Source: Zygnema circumcarinatum SAG 698-1b (Eukaryota > Plantae > Zygnematophyceae). Taken from it: a DNA stretch of 64,000 nucleotides. This document shows positions 8,625 through 32,949 of the stretch, piece by piece. Position numbers and translations under genes: made by a program. The stretch spans positions 1,488,001 through 1,552,000 of the forward strand of contig CM074807.1 of NCBI GenBank assembly GCA_037447605.1, in the 5' to 3' direction. Positions within the stretch are counted from its first letter, which is position 1; each line of letters starts with the position of its first letter. The notes under the pieces are model-generated. The model saw only the letters and a list, made by a program, of their open reading frames with translations. It searched no databases and was not told the origin of the DNA.

Positions 8625-16563
<7,939 letters not shown>

Positions 16564-18631: not shown

Positions 18632-20863
18632 TTCTCTTGGACATTAACTTTGTAGAGTCTCGTTCCATCACAAGCTCCTCATCATGGGGCCCACGAATGC
18701 GTGTATTTGCTTCTGACTCCCACAGGGTGGCGGGGAAAAGCCCTTCTTTTCAATTGTAGCAAATGGGGGGCTTCAATCGTTAACAACCATCTGCGTAAGA
18801 AGTGCGATTTTCTGCGTGACAGGCAATGTATATCGCTGCAAATCCGGACCAGATTCGGCTGATTGTGACGTCTGATTCAGCGCCAAACGGCCGTCTCCAG
18901 TCTGTCAGTCTCTCCGCCAGTCTTCCTCGTGTGCCAACAAAAAAACAAAACAGGTGGAGAAATTGCAAACGAGTTTACTTAATTTCTCAATTCTCAATCT
19001 TATTGACAATTGAGCGTTCAACATTGAACACTCAATAAATACTCCTCAAGCCTTCGAAGAAGTTCCGCGACTCAAAGAGCCACAGAGTGTTAAAATGAGA
19101 AGAAAAGCTACGAGAGAAACTCTATCTGACGCTATCTGACGATATCTGACTATATTCCTCTAAAGATGATGATGATGATGATGGTGACCGAAATCCCCCC
19201 TTTTCCTACCTCCTGGAGATACCCAGACCGCCTTCAGACGGAGCAGGCGCTGGTGCTGCTTTCCAACATCCCTGTTTTGGGCAGGCCCGTTCCATGTGGC
19301 TGTTACCGCAATATGAGCCAAACGAACCCTAACAAAACTGTCACAGCGACACGGAACGCCACATTTTTTGAGTGGGCTGTGCGCGAAACATAACGGAACG
19401 AATCGGAACGGAACGGAGCGCATCGATCGGGTCGTTAGGGTTTATTCTTTCGCCGGATGTGGAAATGAGGGAGTTGGGCAGAGAGGGCCTAAAAGCAGGC
19501 CTTGCTCCGGCTCTGACTGCCAAGGTGAGGGCCGGGCAGGGCAGGGCAGGGCCGTGTTCTGTAGATTTTCCAATTTCATGGAATGCCCACAAAGTGAATA
19601 ATGAGAATGGGAGGTGAAGGCTGAAAGGGAGAACGAAAGGAGCCCACCATTGTTAAGCGACGTTCTCATTGCAGGGAGTTGATTTGAAAACCGGTACACT
19701 GATTACAGGAGAAAGTTCAATGCTGACGGCCGATAGCAAGGATTAGCAAGGAAGGGAAACGAATCCATGCCAGAAATTCGCTAAAGCAAAGGCAGTCTAT
19801 CCAGCCGGTAAGGCTCAAACATCACATGCATTGCGTAAATCTCCCATAACATCTCACGCATGGATGCCTCATTGATCTTAGCCAAGTTGAGCCAAGTCGC
19901 CCATCTGCATTGCTTTCTAAGCAGGTAGCCGTCCATCCCGACCTTGCTTATTCGCGTTGACTGTATGATGTTCAAATTAGTTCTCCCAAAAAAAATGTAT
20001 TGGGAAAGGAAAGCCAAAATCTTTTTAATTTCTTTTTTTTCTCAACCTATTCGGGTTCCCGCTACACGACAGCACTCGATTGTACGGCCAACCCACTCAA
20101 GTCACCATTTTGGTACAGCCAGCTGGCGTCAGCTTCCTAGCCACGTCAGCCATAACCCGCCCAAGGACCGTATCTGTACGGCCAACCCTCTCGCGCGTGC
20201 GCGGTCACTACTTATGTACGATTCATCGTACAACCCCGTCCTGCCAAAGCCATCCATTGTTCCGCCGGCCGGCCCGCGACCGGCAGCCGGCCCTTCTTAT
20301 CGCTTTCCCGATATTTCCCGTCCAACGTGGCGCGCTAAAAATCTCCGCCGCCGCACTTTTCGCCCAATCAGACGCGTCCTTTGCTGGCCTGTCCGTACCG
20401 CCACGTAGACGTGTCATGACGTGACGCCCCCCGATCCGATTTTCCCGGCCGCGCCAAAAGATAGGATTTCGCAAATGTCCATTTACGGATTCGCGGGGCC
20501 TTTTTTTGGTTATTTGTGGCAGCGCGCGGCGGATTTTTTGTCGGGCCCGGCCGGCGAATGGAGCCAAGTCGGACCAGGTTCAGTGCACTTGGAATGATTG
20601 CGCCGTACATCCCCCCTGGCCAAGTGGCCTAAAAAGGGCGGGCCCGCCCGGGCCCTGGCGGTCCCCGCACTCGATCGGCAGCTGCCACGGCCGCGCAAGT
20701 GGGCCTCTTCCTGTCACGCTTTTAGGGTTTGGAGGGAGGAAAGGAGGGAGAAAAAAGGAGAGCGAGGGGGAGGGGGAGAGGGAGTGGAGGCGGCTTCAGG
20801 GGGAGTAGTGCAAGGAGGAGGGGGAAGGACTGAAGCTTGGATACAGGGAGTCTGAAGCTCGCC

Positions 20864-22329
20864 ATGGCTCGGGAGTCGTCTCCCACACGTGTGTTGATGG
20901 GCCCTGAGGCGTCAGAACTTGCAAGCCCGTCGCTGCTGAAGTTTGGAAGCTCCGCGCAATGGAGCACAGTCATGGGAACGGCTTTGAAGGGATGGCAGTC
21001 TTGGGAGCTTCCTGGACCTGTCTCTGTTCTTTCGTCCAAGTCCCTGCTCTGCTCTGATGGCGAAAGTGGCGGATCTGCGTGCCTGGAGTCTCTTGCGCTT
21101 TCGCATCAGGGGACGGGCGCCTCTCTGCTCTCACTGCTCGGGACGTTTCCTTCCACAGTCGAGGCGTGGACGGCGGCGACCAGCCACGCGTTTCAGTTCT
21201 TTCTGTGGGACAATTGGCTGAGAAACCATGGCAAATCTGAGGAATTCAAGGAGTTTGCGGAGTTTTTGGGCGATCTTGAAAGGTCTGCAATGCCGGCACA
21301 GAGTCTGGAAGCGACTGTTGTGGATGGGAGGAATGTCTTCCCTGTACGGCTCGACAGAAAGTATCCCGGGAAACGGCGCAGCTTTGTCGCAGCAGTTCAT
21401 AGCCTGGCAGCAATCGGAGGGGAAGGGGAGTGTGGCGGCTGGTGGTTGAGGCGATACCTGCGAGAATGGCGCGTTTATGCCTCTGTAAGTGATATTTGGG
21501 CGTCGATGTTAGTGAAGGTAGAGAAAATTGAATTTTTGGCATGAAGAGTCCAGAATTTAGTTTTTCCTTTGTCCTTGCTGTCCCTCTTGTCCTGTCGTCC
21601 GATTCCAGTGCCTGCAACTGTTGATCGTGCCCAGATCTAGCAGAGGTTGTCCTTGACATGACAGGGTGCAGGGTGCTGATACGTTGACTTGTTTTACAAC
21701 TGCAGAACGGATTGGAGCTTCAATCTCAGCTGATACAGCAGTGTGCCGACGGCAAAACGCCTGCGTTGGACGCCTTTCTTGAGTGCAAAGCGCTGACCTG
21801 CGGTGCTTGTAAATGGCTCCTTCTTGCTGCTCATAACAGGGGCTTGGCGCCACTGGATGAGGAAACCCATGACGCACTGCTGCCTCTGCTGGCCATGGCT
21901 TCTATGGCGCTGGCCCTGCACAACGACGTCGTCTTGTTCGCAAAGAGCCGTCAGAAAAACCTGAGCTCCCTCAACAGTGCGGTTGTATACGACCACGAAC
22001 AAGCCACTCTTGTTTATAACTTAATTTTGGGTTTGTTTGTCGAGGAAAGGGCCTCCTTGCTGGACGAGGGCCGCTGGCTTTCAGGGGAGCAGAGGAGGAG
22101 GGCACAGCAGGTAGTTGAAGTGATAGAATCCAGCATGTATGGAATCCATTCTTGGCACAAAATTGTGTTACGACGGCATAACAGGGAAGTGAAGGGAACG
22201 GCATTATACGAAGAAGATTGCTTCGATTTGAGCTCGGCGCCGAGCTGGATGGCTCCGCACATTCGTGGAGCAGTGGCTAGTGTTGTCAGAAAAGTGATAG
22301 CGGCCTCCGGTCACTCGCTTAACTGCTGA
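20864..22329 (+). CDS. Class I terpene-synthase-fold protein, microbial type (MTPSL-like), with degenerate catalytic motifs; 414 aa
   Basis: Exons 20864-21484 and 21706-22329, phase-0 GT-AG intron of 221 bp. Motifs appear in the TPS order and spacing: LLGTFP...FQFFLWDNWLR (DDxxD position), WRVYASNGLE...GKTPALDAFLECKALTCG (YL..RR.T.G position), LALHNDVVLFAKS....LNSAVV (NSE/DTE position), YGIHSWHKIVLRRH (WxxxxxRY position). Confidence 0.72.
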
Positions 22330-22788
22330 AAGTGCTTGTTATAAATAGTAGTATTATCCATTGTTTTTGTGTTAAATAGTGCAGCTTTGCTTGTTATATG
22401 TTGTTTGGAGTAAAGTAGATCGCAGTTCTGTTCTGTTCTGTTTATTGGTTTATTGCTTTGTTGATTTCCTTTGCATATACAGGATAGCAAGCCGAATAAG
22501 CCAGGAATTACATGTAGTTATTCAATTCAGTAAAGCTCGTCCTGCTTTGAAGAAGCATGACCTCTTCGACTTTCCTTGAATCTGCAGGTTTCGTGAAAGA
22601 TCGTTGATGATGATAAAAACTGAATGTTCATTCCTCTTCTAAACGCCTGTGTTTGATTAGACCGCGTTGTCCTCTAACGTTTTTCTCCACGCCCTGAAGT
22701 GGAGCCCTGGACTCCTGCGGTGATGGGGCACAGTCACCCTTCTTCATTCTGTGGACCCCTGAAGTCTGTATCTTGGAAAGCTTTCAAT

Positions 22789-27200: not shown

Positions 27201-30193
27201 CCAACGCGTTGTGGTCAGTACAAGGTAAAAAAAAATAGCCAGCAGCAACAAGATCTGTTCTCAAATCCTGCAGCCAAGTGACAAGTGACAGAAGCTGCAT
27301 GCACAATCTTACTTTGAAATTCAAACTAGTCTACTCCAGTTTTAGCTGCTACTTACTCCTTTGAAATCTAGCGCAGCTGCTCGATATCCAGGAAGAATGG
27401 TATGATAGTCCTTTACATTAGCAAACAGCAGCAACTGCAGTTCACCACCCAACAGATTCACAGTGAGCACGCATGCCTCGGTATTCCCCTTCAACTATGA
27501 CTTGAGAGGAAAAACTAAGCTGCTTAGATACAATACATGGCTAAGCAGGCAAGCAGCAAGCTCTTGCCTCTCACACCGGACTCAGTCAAGACAGCACTCC
27601 GTCCATAACAAGTCACAAGGCCTATAGTAAGCTTAGGTTTCTTCATCTCCAGCACCATCCAACTGCACAAAAGGTCTTCTTCAAAAACAAAACTTCGTAT
27701 TTAGGGAAGAACCAAGTCTACTTATTCACAGGTAGCTCTGATGTATGGCAAAACCCACTTGTACGCTGCCGTGGATTATTGAGCATATTGAGATTCACTT
27801 GGTTGATGTTGAACTCTTTTTCTTTCACTAGTGACAAGAGGAACAGTAGTGCTAGAGAATCACTGACAAAATGCCAGTTGTGGCGTGGTGAAGATTGCCT
27901 TGGTGGAAAAACCAAATTTAGTTTTAAGCGATGTATTCCAAACTCTCATTCTCGTCCCTGACCAGTGCTCGCTATAACTAAGGAAGTTTTTGGAAAAAGC
28001 ATCCATGCCTGCACCACCTTGTTGCACATGTTGGCTTCCACCTCCACAAGAGCTTTTACCCAGGGGCTAAGGACGAGTTGTGAAGCTGTGACCTCTGGCA
28101 TCAAAGGTAAGCACCAACCTGCCTCTTCGATCCCTCACTGCCAAATATCTGTGCCGACGTCTCATCGCTGAACGTGATGACCAGAGGAAGCTTATTTGAT
28201 TTAAAGAACTTAGAGAGATCCTCTGCGATAAAACTTCCCTCTGCGTATGCATTCAAGATTCACGAAGTAAAGAGGTTATTCCCTTAAAAAATAATCAAAA
28301 GGTGCAAAGAGCCCATTTTTTTGTTGCAAAAAATCATAAAATCTTCATAAACTTTTACTTGTAATACGACTTCAATGTTTCTGAAGGAGGTCGGCGCTGA
28401 CTCTTGCTTTTCACCACACATTACTGCCTAGCAAGTTGCACCTTCATCCTAGAAAATAGTGATATGCTGTAAGAGCTACATACATGGCAGACAAGATGTT
28501 GTTTCAGTAAAAAAAATATCCTTCAAGGTGCCCACCTACTGCAGACAGTTAGCATGGATTTTTTAGTCATTCCCGGTCAGTAGGCACTTCTCAGCAACTA
28601 TTTTTTAGGGCTTTTAGGGTTTTAAGGGTTTTTAGGGTTTTCAGGGTTTTAGGGTTTTTGTTACATGCGCAAGTGTGGCAACAAAAGCGAAATCCTGAAA
28701 GAATAAGAAAATGTATGAATGAGTCGATCCAAGCTTGAGTTACCCACAACACATCATGTAAATGCCAGAAAGTGTGCTAGTGGGGAAATGGTCATCGACT
28801 TGCATACCAAATTTAACGAACTTCTCATCCTCCTTCTTAATCACAGCAATAGCGGGCGACTTGCCGGTGTCTAGACCAAAGAGTGCAGCAATGGCGGCAT
28901 CAGTAGTCTGAACAAAGTAGACATTGTCATCTTGGGCTGCTGCAGATTGGTACTCTTCATATTCTGGCCCCTGCAACCTCCTCCCTTCTTCAAGCGTCAG
29001 CCTTGTAAGCAGAAAAACCCACGATGCTGCAGCTACCACAGGATGGAACATAGAATACATAGCACTGCCCAAAAGACAGAGAAATCAAGAAATCAATCAA
29101 CAGAAGTGGTAACAAGAACATCGCTTTCAAGTTCCAGCTGTTAACGTTTGGAAATGTCTTCAACCAAAATTAATCCAGGTCTTCGAGGACTGGATTCACC
29201 TCAAACTTACTGAAGTAGCCAATGCCAATGACAGCTTTCTCGGCAAGAACTACCTCCGCCAGCTTCTTGTCAGTGAGTGAATTAACAGGTGGCCCAACCT
29301 TTTTTCGAATCCACGCCACGATATCGTCACTGTGAATCACGCGAAACAGGAGGCAGCACATGCTTCAAAAATAGGAATAGTTTGTTCAATAGGCTTGCGA
29401 TGAATGCCATCAAGACCAATCAGTACACGGCTTAGCCGCGTAATGATCCAAGGTCGTCAACACCAATGACTGATCCTCGTTTAATAAAATCGTTCCACCA
29501 GCCTCAAATGCGGGCAGCAAGAATGACACACAGCGCAAGAGACATGCCCGTGATCACTTCGATAATCTGAAAAGGTTTTGGCTTTCAGCTTTTTGTCTCT
29601 CTATGCCTCTGCTTTGGTGCATGGACGAAGCGCTTAACAGACCTGGTTCTTCCTCCAGAATACTGTATCGTAGCACCTTTATAGAAAAGGAAGATTGTTG
29701 GATAACCCTCCACTCCATATTTCTCAGCCATGTCCGTTTCACGAGTGCCGTCAATTTTTGCAAGCGTCACATTTTCAGATTTGAGCGTAGTAGCAGCCTT
29801 TTTGTACTCTGGCTCTAAGGATTTGCAGTGTCCACACCACGGAGCATAGAACTCGACCAGAATCGGGTCAGGTGACTCAATGGCAGCCACAAGACGCGCA
29901 GTATTGAACGACAGCACATCGCTGCCAGGCTCATCTACAGGCTCCTTCGCTTCCGGTTCATCCTCTTCATCGTCATATTGCTCGTCCCCGTCATCCATGC
30001 CCCCATCCTCCTCATCATAGGCGCTGCCCTGTCCGTCTTCCGGCTCATCAATCTCTCCTTCGTCGTCTTCAAGCGCGTCGGCGTCGTCCTCCCCGTCGTA
30101 GTCCTCCGCCTGCGCCTGCTGCAGCAGCGCCAGAGGCTGCAGCAGCAGCAGCGCCGCCAGAAGGAGCGCCAGCGGCTGCCTCACTCGCGCCAT
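24223..30193 (-). CDS. Protein disulfide isomerase (PDIL1-3/1-4-like; acidic N-terminal extension, a-b-b'-a' domains, KDEL)
   Basis: Signal peptide MARVRQPLALLLAALLLLQPLALLQQAQA, then a D/E-rich tract, ILVEFYAPWCGHCKSLEPEY, GYPTIFLF, a second site YAPWCSHCKKLAPVYEKL, IEGFPTLYF, and C-terminal RVKDEL*. Confidence 0.95.
28601..28659 (+). repeat. Interstitial telomere-like T4-6AGGG tract in a PDI intron
   Basis: ttttttaggg cttttaggg ttttaaggg tttttaggg ttttcaggg ttttaggg: six degenerate units. Confidence 0.75.
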
Positions 30194-30842: not shown

Positions 30843-32949
30843 ATGCAGTTCCTGCGAGGACTGTGCGATGACATGCTGGTGCTGAAGAGCATATGGCTCC
30901 CTTCTATCACCGGGGACACGCACAAGGAGCGTCTCGACTCCTTCTACGGCCCGCAGGCGCAGGCTTGTGCGTTGCGTGTGGCTTACTACTGGATTGTAGC
31001 TTGGAGTCGTGCATTTTGGTTGATCTTTTATATTTTTAATGATATGGTGAATTCATGTTTGCAGCATGTATCCATGTGTGTGTGGTGACGCTCGTTACTC
31101 GTGCTGGCTTTTTTGTCCTTCATAGTAATTTGTAAAAACTTGTCTGACTTCAAACTGGATACGTAGAGTTTCTTCCATGATTGAGCGTTATTTTAGAGCT
31201 TACACATTTCTGCCAGGCCTCATTCCAGAATATGAAGCAATGTAGGGCCTCGTGCCAGGTCCTTGAGGGAACATAATCTGGTAAGTCAATTAAATGGCCA
31301 TGAATGATAAAAAAAAAAAAAAAAAAGCATTTTCAGCTTATAAGCATCGGCAATTTATTGCCACCGAGCAATATCCAAAGTATCGATCTTGGAATTCGAA
31401 CTGGCTATATGGGAATTTGTGTTGAGGTTTGTCAATTTCTCTAGGCTGACACCTTCATGTCTCCAAAAAATTGAACAGCCATGGTTATGAACTTTAAAGA
31501 AGGAAGGGGAGGAAGAGAAGCGCCGGTCAAGGATGGTGTGAGTATCTTTAAGTAGCAATGTTTTTGCCCTGTTTTCCTGGTGCAGATGATCGCTTCAGGG
31601 CCAATTTTCTCCATGGCCGCCGTCCACTGCTTCAGGCGTGTGCAGCACAAGTCCAGGCAATGGAGGATCAGTCAGGACTTGTATGGGTCGACCTAGGAGG
31701 GGGCACTGGTGAAAACATTGACATGATGGGCGACTACATGGACCTCTCTAAATTTGATAAGATTTACATGGTGGACTTGTGCGGACCCCTCTGTGAGGTT
31801 GCCAAGCAGAAAGCCACAGAGAAGGGGTGGAGCAATGTGGAAATCATAGAGGGAGACGTTTGTGACTTTGTGCCAACAGGAGGACGGGCAAAGCTGGTTA
31901 CATTCTCCTACTCCCTCTCCAGTGAGTTGTCGTTGTTCATTCCTCGTTTGCTGCCTTTTCTGTCGCTGAATCTATGTGCAGGAGCGTATGTTGTGGTCAA
32001 CTGTAAGCTTTCGTGTGTACCATTATTTGGAGTGAGCAGAGCCAGTCTATATTTCTTTTGGAAAGAGCCTTCAAGAGAAACACGTTGTGACCACGCTAAC
32101 GGGGCAGGGTATGGAGCAGGTTCAGAATGACTTATATTCCAGCTTTCGTGTACTTGTTTGCTTTTCTGAAGTTGCTGTTGCAGATGTGCTTCGCAGTCCA
32201 TCAACGAGGCAGTATTGTTTTGATAAGGCTTGTCATGCATCAGTCTGCTGTTCAAGATGAGCATCCGTCTTGGACCACTTTTCAGACAGTCTGTAAGGGA
32301 AAAGACAAGGATGTGCAAATGTCATGTGCAGTGATTCCGCCTTTTATGGATGCCATTGACAAGGCAATCTCATACCTTGACAGCCGCCAGGGAATATTCG
32401 GCATTGCTGATTTCTATGTGTCAAGGAAGTATGACTTGCCTCCGCGCCAGCACAGCTATCTGACCAGGTGGTTTTGGCGAGCTATTTTTGACCTTGATGG
32501 GATTGACCTTGGACCAGAACGAAGAATGTATCTCGAACATCGTCTTCAAAGAGGTGATCGTTTTTGGTAACCTGCTTACGATTTATCATATTTGGAGCCA
32601 ATCTTTTCATTCGGGTGCTATGGGAATGCAAAGGAAGCGCTATGATCTTCTGCCGGTTTAGTAGAGCCAGGGCCAGAACTCATTCACTCACCAGCTGAGA
32701 CTTTTAGTAATCTGATACTGTATTGTACAGGCATCATATAGTTGAGGCGTATTAATTTGCGCTTGTTTGCTTGGAAAGAATTCCAATTTTACTGAGGCAC
32801 ACCTGCACTATCTTGGAGTTCTAACTGGGGACCAACTTGAGGAGCGTTCTGCAGTGAAGGAGATAAACAGCAGAGGCTCTATACCGTACGTTCCGCTATT
32901 GAAGGCCCCTTTCTATGTCTGGCTTGGACGCCATATACCGCCTCAGTAG
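30843..32949 (+). CDS. BtaB-like SAM-dependent methyltransferase (N-terminal half of betaine lipid synthase BTA1), stand-alone, 258 aa
   Basis: Exons 30843-30966, 31586-31921, 32332-32553 and 32855-32949 total 777 nt. They give DDMLVLKSIW..HKERLDSFYGPQAQAYDRFRANFLHGRRPLL, WVDLGGGTGEN, VTFSYSLSMIPPF, ADFYVSRKYDLP, IDLGPERR.YLE, GSIPYVPLLKAPFYVWLGRHIPPQ*, matching the Chlamydomonas BTA1 BtaB domain from memory. Confidence 0.9.

Follow-up and report, generated by a model that had tools for sequence, protein, structure and literature searches.

The window, by which we mean the whole stretch of 64,000 nucleotides of Zygnema circumcarinatum DNA that was analysed, carries on its forward strand (20864-22329) a gene whose product is a single-domain protein of 414 aa encoded by two exons. 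Coding begins at an ATG at 20864. The first exon (20864-21484; 207 codons, residues 1-207) corresponds to the N-terminal half of the fold domain described below, and the second (21706-22329; residues 208-414 followed by a TGA stop codon) corresponds to the C-terminal half. Between them lies a phase-0 GT..AG intron of 221 nt (21485-21705; GTAAGT...TGCAG). No second copy of the gene was found within the 64-kb window.

Splicing of this gene was evident in public transcriptome data. All four of the runs examined, which come from different studies, yielded contigs carrying the joint 21484|21706. A contig of run X20 (1784 nt) joins 20560-21484 to 21706-22564 with zero mismatches at a depth of 280, and it represents the longest transcript, whose 5' UTR spans 20560-20863; the transcripts of the other three runs begin at 20778-20851. 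At their 3' ends, the transcript contigs terminate between 22494 and 22641, placing the 3' UTR at 22330-22641. A form that retains the intron was present at a depth of 3.5-10, versus 27-280 for the exons, which amounts to low-level retention. Because spliced transcript contigs match in four runs, the model of the gene at 20864-22329 is correct and its expression is confirmed. An earlier note on this DNA had described a clean two-exon ORF of 414 aa and proposed that its splice be confirmed by RNA-seq; the frame, the GT..AG intron and the transcripts bear out the former, and the joint seen in all four runs supplies the latter.

Some further features of the transcripts were recorded. The retained intron contains an in-frame stop codon at 21542-21544. 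The 5' UTR of the longest form includes an upstream ORF of 12 codons (20594-20632) and a GA-rich polypurine tract (approximately 20731-20830) with a tandem GA-rich unit, and similar GA-rich sequence occurs in all four runs as loose ends of other transcripts.

The surroundings of the gene are eukaryotic. Approximately 10 kb upstream, at 10941 on the forward strand, is the catalytic-loop signature HCDLKPEN of a DYRK/YAK1-type kinase, and on the reverse strand at approximately 29588-30193 lies a PDI-A6-like thioredoxin exon with the WCGHC motif, for which a homology search returned generic PDI-A6 matches only. The gene had been described previously as flanked by YAK1 and PDI genes; both signatures are present, with eukaryotic genes on either side, but neither is immediately adjacent. 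The associated proposal that the gene is integrated in its host, rather than a contaminant, agrees with the spliced structure and with the eukaryotic genes on both flanks, and the locus is shown to be a functional gene in the nuclear genome of a streptophyte alga. Elsewhere in the window, a search for homologous proteins with the ORF at 13505-14746 gave zero matches, and the ORF at 31558-32127 (forward strand) gave a weak match to ubiE/COQ5-type methyltransferases (PF01209; E 1.3e-4) and is probably an unrelated gene.

Exon 2 served as query in an exhaustive HMMER (phmmer) search that covered 1.84 billion representative sequences. Twelve proteins reached E <= 0.001, the top match being 39% identical to exon 2, and on inspection all 12 appear to belong to the same family. 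The relatives that carry an organism name are ME000167S01815 of Mesotaenium endlicherianum and proteins of several Closterium strains, all of them Zygnematophyceae; the others come from further public assemblies and transcriptomes. Full-length members are 406-479 aa long and can be aligned with the window protein over their entire length, and exon 1 is 41% identical to the corresponding exon-1 ORF of another contig, L003. We found no published description of this motif-altered family in the literature. Besides the altered landmarks described below, the members share an N-terminal SPTRV motif (residues 6-10 of the window protein; 20879-20893, forward strand), which most full-length members have close to their N-terminus, as well as WQxWELP, FPxRLxxKYPxK, WxxRYL, SASLSxxxxFD, and a C-terminal PxW helix. 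One deposited gene model in the family deserves comment. For the Closterium sp. Naga37s-1 protein P0017 (contig L124, 8001-9551), the model includes an intron close to the 3' end; the annotated C-terminus looks wrong, because the uninterrupted ORF, of 479 aa, ends in the C-terminus of the family (PQW...IETA...), in the same form as another Closterium copy, P0006.

Remote homologs were sought with exon 1 and exon 2 as separate queries, and the spliced whole protein was used in profile alignments. Exon 2 matched the Pfam family PF19086 (Terpene_syn_C_2) with 20.4 bits (E 4.6e-4), below the gathering cut-off of 23.7. The HMM search that had been suggested for this gene therefore found the expected family in exon 2, but at a score under the threshold. 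Weak matches to PF19086 were obtained for six of 16 family members, those other than the window copy scoring 13-16 bits or nothing, and the cut-off was reached by none of the 16. In language-model (Atlas) features of exon 2, clusters of microbial terpene synthases ranked first (0.93). Exon 1 alone had no recognisable match in Pfam and was unrecognised by its Atlas features (best score 0.60), and a profile search of the PDB with the N-terminal half alone gave chance matches only (RNR beta, Prp8). When the profile of the family was compared with all PDB sequences, the best 12 matches were all terpene synthases, with E values of 0.06-0.8.

Predicted structures pointed to the same fold. For P0002, a full-length relative that is 34% identical to the window protein, AlphaFold2 gave a model with a pLDDT of 82 and a pTM of 0.84. 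As the earlier note had advised, a predicted structure was submitted to Foldseek: the top 50 matches of the P0002 model in the PDB and its top 30 in Swiss-Prot were bacterial, fungal, and amoebal class I synthases. By VIA-align, the model superimposed on selinadiene synthase (4OKM) with a Z of 23.4 and an rmsd of 3.4 A over 291 of 345 residues, and Z exceeded 20 for dozens more class I synthases and was approximately 20 for the N-prenyltransferases DabA and KabA. The exon-2 half of the window protein, modelled with rows of the family alignment, had a pLDDT of 87.5 and matched the C-terminal halves (residues ~150-350) of class I synthases with Z of 10-14.

Profile-profile alignment was performed with hhalign in local mode, with the spliced window protein as master of the family profile and with geosmin synthase genes, taken from bacterial genomes by DNA pattern, as templates. 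The family aligned with 43 C-terminal domains of geosmin synthase over 321 columns (probability 91%, E 1.1e-6) and with 29 N-terminal domains over 327 columns (E 0.01). Because the sequence, structure-model, and profile-profile results stand together, we regard the predicted assignment of the window protein to the microbial-type (alpha-only) class I terpene synthase fold as solid; the claim of such a fold, made initially from the letters of this DNA, is upheld by the PF19086 match, by hhalign, and by the models of P0002 and of exon 2. The protein has no match to PF01397, the plant beta domain, or to PF03936. Typical plant terpene synthases carry both domains and exceed 500 aa, whereas the window protein, at 414 aa and with neither Pfam match, has the alpha-only architecture that lacks the plant N-terminal beta domain.

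A different assignment was considered and rejected. In Atlas features of whole P0002, clusters of the cyanobacterial CO2 hydration proteins ChpX/ChpY (CupA/CupB; about 430 aa) ranked above terpene synthases (0.94), a result that was itself flagged as probably wrong. None of the 16 family members matched PF10216 at E <= 10, no CupA chain appeared when the family profile was searched against PDB sequences, and an Atlas shape search returned nothing informative.

The four landmarks of class I synthases had been reported for this protein as present in order, each in altered form. The four strings in question begin at residues 116 (DNWLR), 231 (FLECKALTCG), 280 (NDVVLFAKS), and 357 (WHKIVLRRH). Their positions and the profile-profile alignments agree with this description, each string being aligned onto its class I landmark. 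In place of DDxxD/E, the window protein has W115-D116-N-W118-L-R120 (21206-21223), aligned by hhalign to DDHFLE and DDYYP; the register is certain to within one residue, D116 falling on the first or the second Asp according to the template, with moderate posterior confidence. The position of the diphosphate-sensor Arg is occupied by K235 (21787-21789), as indicated by hhalign and by a HMMER alignment to pentalenene synthase, followed by T238, so that the basic character is retained while the exact residue is changed. The helix that carries K235 breaks at C239-G240 (residues 32-33 of the exon-2 model), which is the site of the G1/G2 kink. At the NSE/DTE position (21922-21948), HMMER and hhalign alignments place N280-D281-V-V-L284-F-A-K287-S288, in which Asn280 and Asp281 are kept, the Ser/Thr is replaced by Leu284, and the Glu by Ser288. 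The same two methods place W357...R363-R364-H365 at WxxxxxRY (22153-22179), with Trp357 and Arg363 kept and the Tyr replaced by Arg364. Neither the canonical Asp-rich DDxxD/E motif nor the canonical NSE/DTE motif is thus present in the window protein.

These alterations are not peculiar to the window copy, as the first description of the gene had implied, but ancestral to a conserved family represented in at least Closterium, Mesotaenium, and several transcriptomes. At the Asp-rich site all full-length members have W-[D/N]-x-W-[L/M]-[K/R/S], or in its longer form L-W-[D/N]-x-W-[L/M]-[K/R/S]-x-x-G, with W115 and W118 invariant and D116 nearly so. The sensor region reads TPxLxxFLx-x-[R/K/Q] across the family; at the NSE site the Asp alone is invariant; and at the RY site most members have HGxxxWxxxxx[R/K]F, with Ala or Gln in place of the basic residue in a few. 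Since the altered motifs are shared by the members, the metal ligands were replaced before the lineages of Closterium, Mesotaenium, and the others split. Because all members lack the first or the last acidic ligand at the Asp-rich site, and two NSE ligands out of three, we infer from the alignments that the canonical cluster of three Mg2+ ions cannot form in the window protein or in its relatives. Without such a cluster, ordinary ionisation-dependent, and hence Mg-dependent, terpene cyclisation by the window protein would be unlikely.

The family is under constraint. Of 52 positions with a conservation of 80% or more among the other members, the window protein keeps 41 (79%) and departs at 11, and the other full-length members keep 75-96% of the strongly conserved positions of the family. 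The window protein also occupies the longest branch of the tree (1.51, versus a median of 0.72), and this long branch, together with the 11 departures, could mean partly relaxed constraint in this copy. A comparison of dN/dS with related species had been proposed at the outset; it was made between Closterium copies rather than on the window gene itself, and in a pair from two strains dN was 0.032 and dS 0.19, giving a dN/dS of 0.17, which is not near 1. In this same pair the intron is 76% identical, versus 93-94% for the exons. The Closterium pair P0006 and P0017, which has six differences, was left out of this measurement as too similar. Purifying selection on the family is thereby shown, at least in Closterium. 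The phase-0 intron position is common to the window gene (...YAS|NGL...), L003 (...YAQ|DGL...), and Closterium NIES-54 (...YST|AGL...); another Closterium paralog is without that intron. Taken together, the constraint, the dN/dS, and the shared intron position argue for a long vertical history of the family within the algae and against a pseudogene, a contaminant, or a recent transfer.

Two accounts of the gene's status and origin were weighed against this evidence. That it is a decaying pseudogene, a mis-assembly, or a contaminant would be in keeping with the alteration of every catalytic motif and with the long branch of the window copy; we nevertheless consider it very improbable, and reject pseudogene decay and contamination, given an intact frame, a canonical intron that is spliced, good transcript depth in four runs, the retention of 79% of family-conserved positions, a family dN/dS of 0.17, and eukaryotic genes on both sides. 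Somewhat less remote, though still improbable, is the suggestion of the earlier note that the MTPSL lineage extends into the algae, or that a separate, recent transfer from bacteria or fungi was followed by loss of the motifs. Microbial synthases and MTPSLs have the same alpha-only architecture, and published surveys found no charophyte terpene synthase (PMC9169658), which could make any such gene seem foreign. Against this, the 12 relatives found at E <= 0.001 among 1.84 billion representatives all belong, as examined, to the same family, with no canonical MTPSL-sized synthase among them; every member already has altered motifs, and the conserved DDxxD and NSE/DTE that characterize MTPSLs are absent from the family; and the phase-0 intron common to the window gene, L003, and a Closterium gene speaks for long vertical descent. 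An ancient transfer followed by strong divergence may have occurred. We conclude that the gene belongs to a small, old, constrained family of streptophyte algae and is neither a decaying gene nor contamination.

What this family does can be approached from the residues that it has kept. The positions that contact the diphosphate (the sensor and the Arg of the RY motif) largely stay basic. The G helix is still kinked, the Trp of the J helix persists, and so do the hydrophobic residues that precede the Asp-rich site; two Trp at that site are invariant, and most members have a basic residue where the last Asp/Glu of the Asp-rich motif stood. Conservation appears to cluster around the opening of the former active site, and because conserved residues concentrate there, the pocket of the window protein is probably still used. 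Our best guess, drawn from the aligned residues, is that the Lys/Arg and Trp side chains would bind an anionic, probably isoprenoid, ligand without a metal, and that the protein would act either as (i) a non-catalytic binder or regulator, or (ii) an enzyme with non-canonical chemistry, for which AsR6 offers a precedent (PMC8457177). The joint explanation that we favor, to which we assign a probability of roughly 0.7, is that of a small, old algal family with the terpene synthase fold, whose named members are zygnematophytes and whose protein is not an ordinary cyclase but probably still uses its pocket, most likely for metal-independent binding of an anionic ligand. The pair of options offered originally, a pseudo-enzyme or new chemistry, still stands.

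The chief competitor of this explanation is that the protein is still an active terpene synthase or prenyl-diphosphate enzyme, working with a reduced metal site (D116, N280, and D281) or by Lys/Arg-assisted catalysis of the kind seen in AsR6 or DabA/KabA. The basic residues at diphosphate-contacting positions and the kept G-helix kink are compatible with it, as is the invariant Asp left at both of the sites that once bound metal; these two Asp residues, together with Asn280 in the window copy, may form a reduced metal site. The fold is moreover shared with the N-prenyltransferases DabA and KabA (Z about 20), and AsR6 is an instance of this fold working with a binuclear cluster and an essential Lys (PMC8457177). 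We nonetheless regard such an enzyme as doubtful: throughout the family the Asp-rich motif has lost its first or its last acidic ligand and the NSE triad retains just one of its three, and the Pfam score lies under the cut-off in every member. A more specific proposal is that a Trp/Lys/Arg site replaces the three-Mg site, making the protein either a metal-independent prenyl-diphosphate enzyme or a receptor-like binder of an isoprenoid signal. We offer this proposal tentatively, as a possibility well short of even odds. If true, a protein with a Trp/Lys/Arg site would constitute a new functional class in the terpenoid synthase fold; published surveys of charophyte terpene synthases would have missed this class, its members lying below their Pfam thresholds.

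At least some streptophyte algae thus carry a conserved, expressed protein family with a predicted terpene synthase fold and a consistently altered active-site mouth, and no other algae are as closely related to land plants as the zygnematophytes. If the family handles isoprenoids without a metal cluster, it would widen the repertoire of the fold and open a new way into the study of isoprenoid metabolism or signalling in this lineage; if it is a non-catalytic binder, it would represent a natural, ancient case of a terpene synthase turned pseudo-enzyme.

Among known systems, the bacterial and fungal class I synthases (PF19086; 4OKM, epi-isozizaene synthase, and the geosmin synthase domains) share with the family a single alpha-helical-bundle domain of similar size, and all of the landmark positions (Asp-rich, sensor, G-helix kink, NSE, and WxxxxxRY) can be aligned, at a sequence identity of just 10-19%. 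The family differs from them in that its metal ligands are replaced and the Tyr of the RY motif is a Phe or an Arg, and in features of its own: the motifs SPTRV, WQxWELP, and FPxRLxxKYPxK, a disordered segment inserted behind the Asp-rich helix, and the C-terminal PxW helix. MTPSLs (Jia et al. 2016; Jia et al. 2022, PMC9169658) resemble the family in being nuclear genes of the plant lineage that have introns and encode the alpha-only, microbial-type fold. They keep DDxxD and NSE/DTE, make terpenes, and are reported from land plants only, where they have been described as confined to non-seed plants (PMC9169658), whereas the family lacks these motifs and its named members are zygnematophytes. 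Jia et al. (2022), who surveyed transcriptomes of 47 charophytes' worth of data and 31 genomes of algae, reported no terpene synthase at a Pfam E value of 1e-5 (PMC9169658), a threshold at which no member of the family is detectable. AsR6, a humulene synthase of the terpene synthase fold, has a non-canonical site and relies on an essential Lys (PMC8457177); like DabA/KabA (6VKZ, 9M1W), it shows that this fold supports chemistry beyond the standard set of motifs. The likeness of these enzymes to the family, as far as shown here, is one of fold, and both AsR6 and DabA/KabA still use Mg2+.
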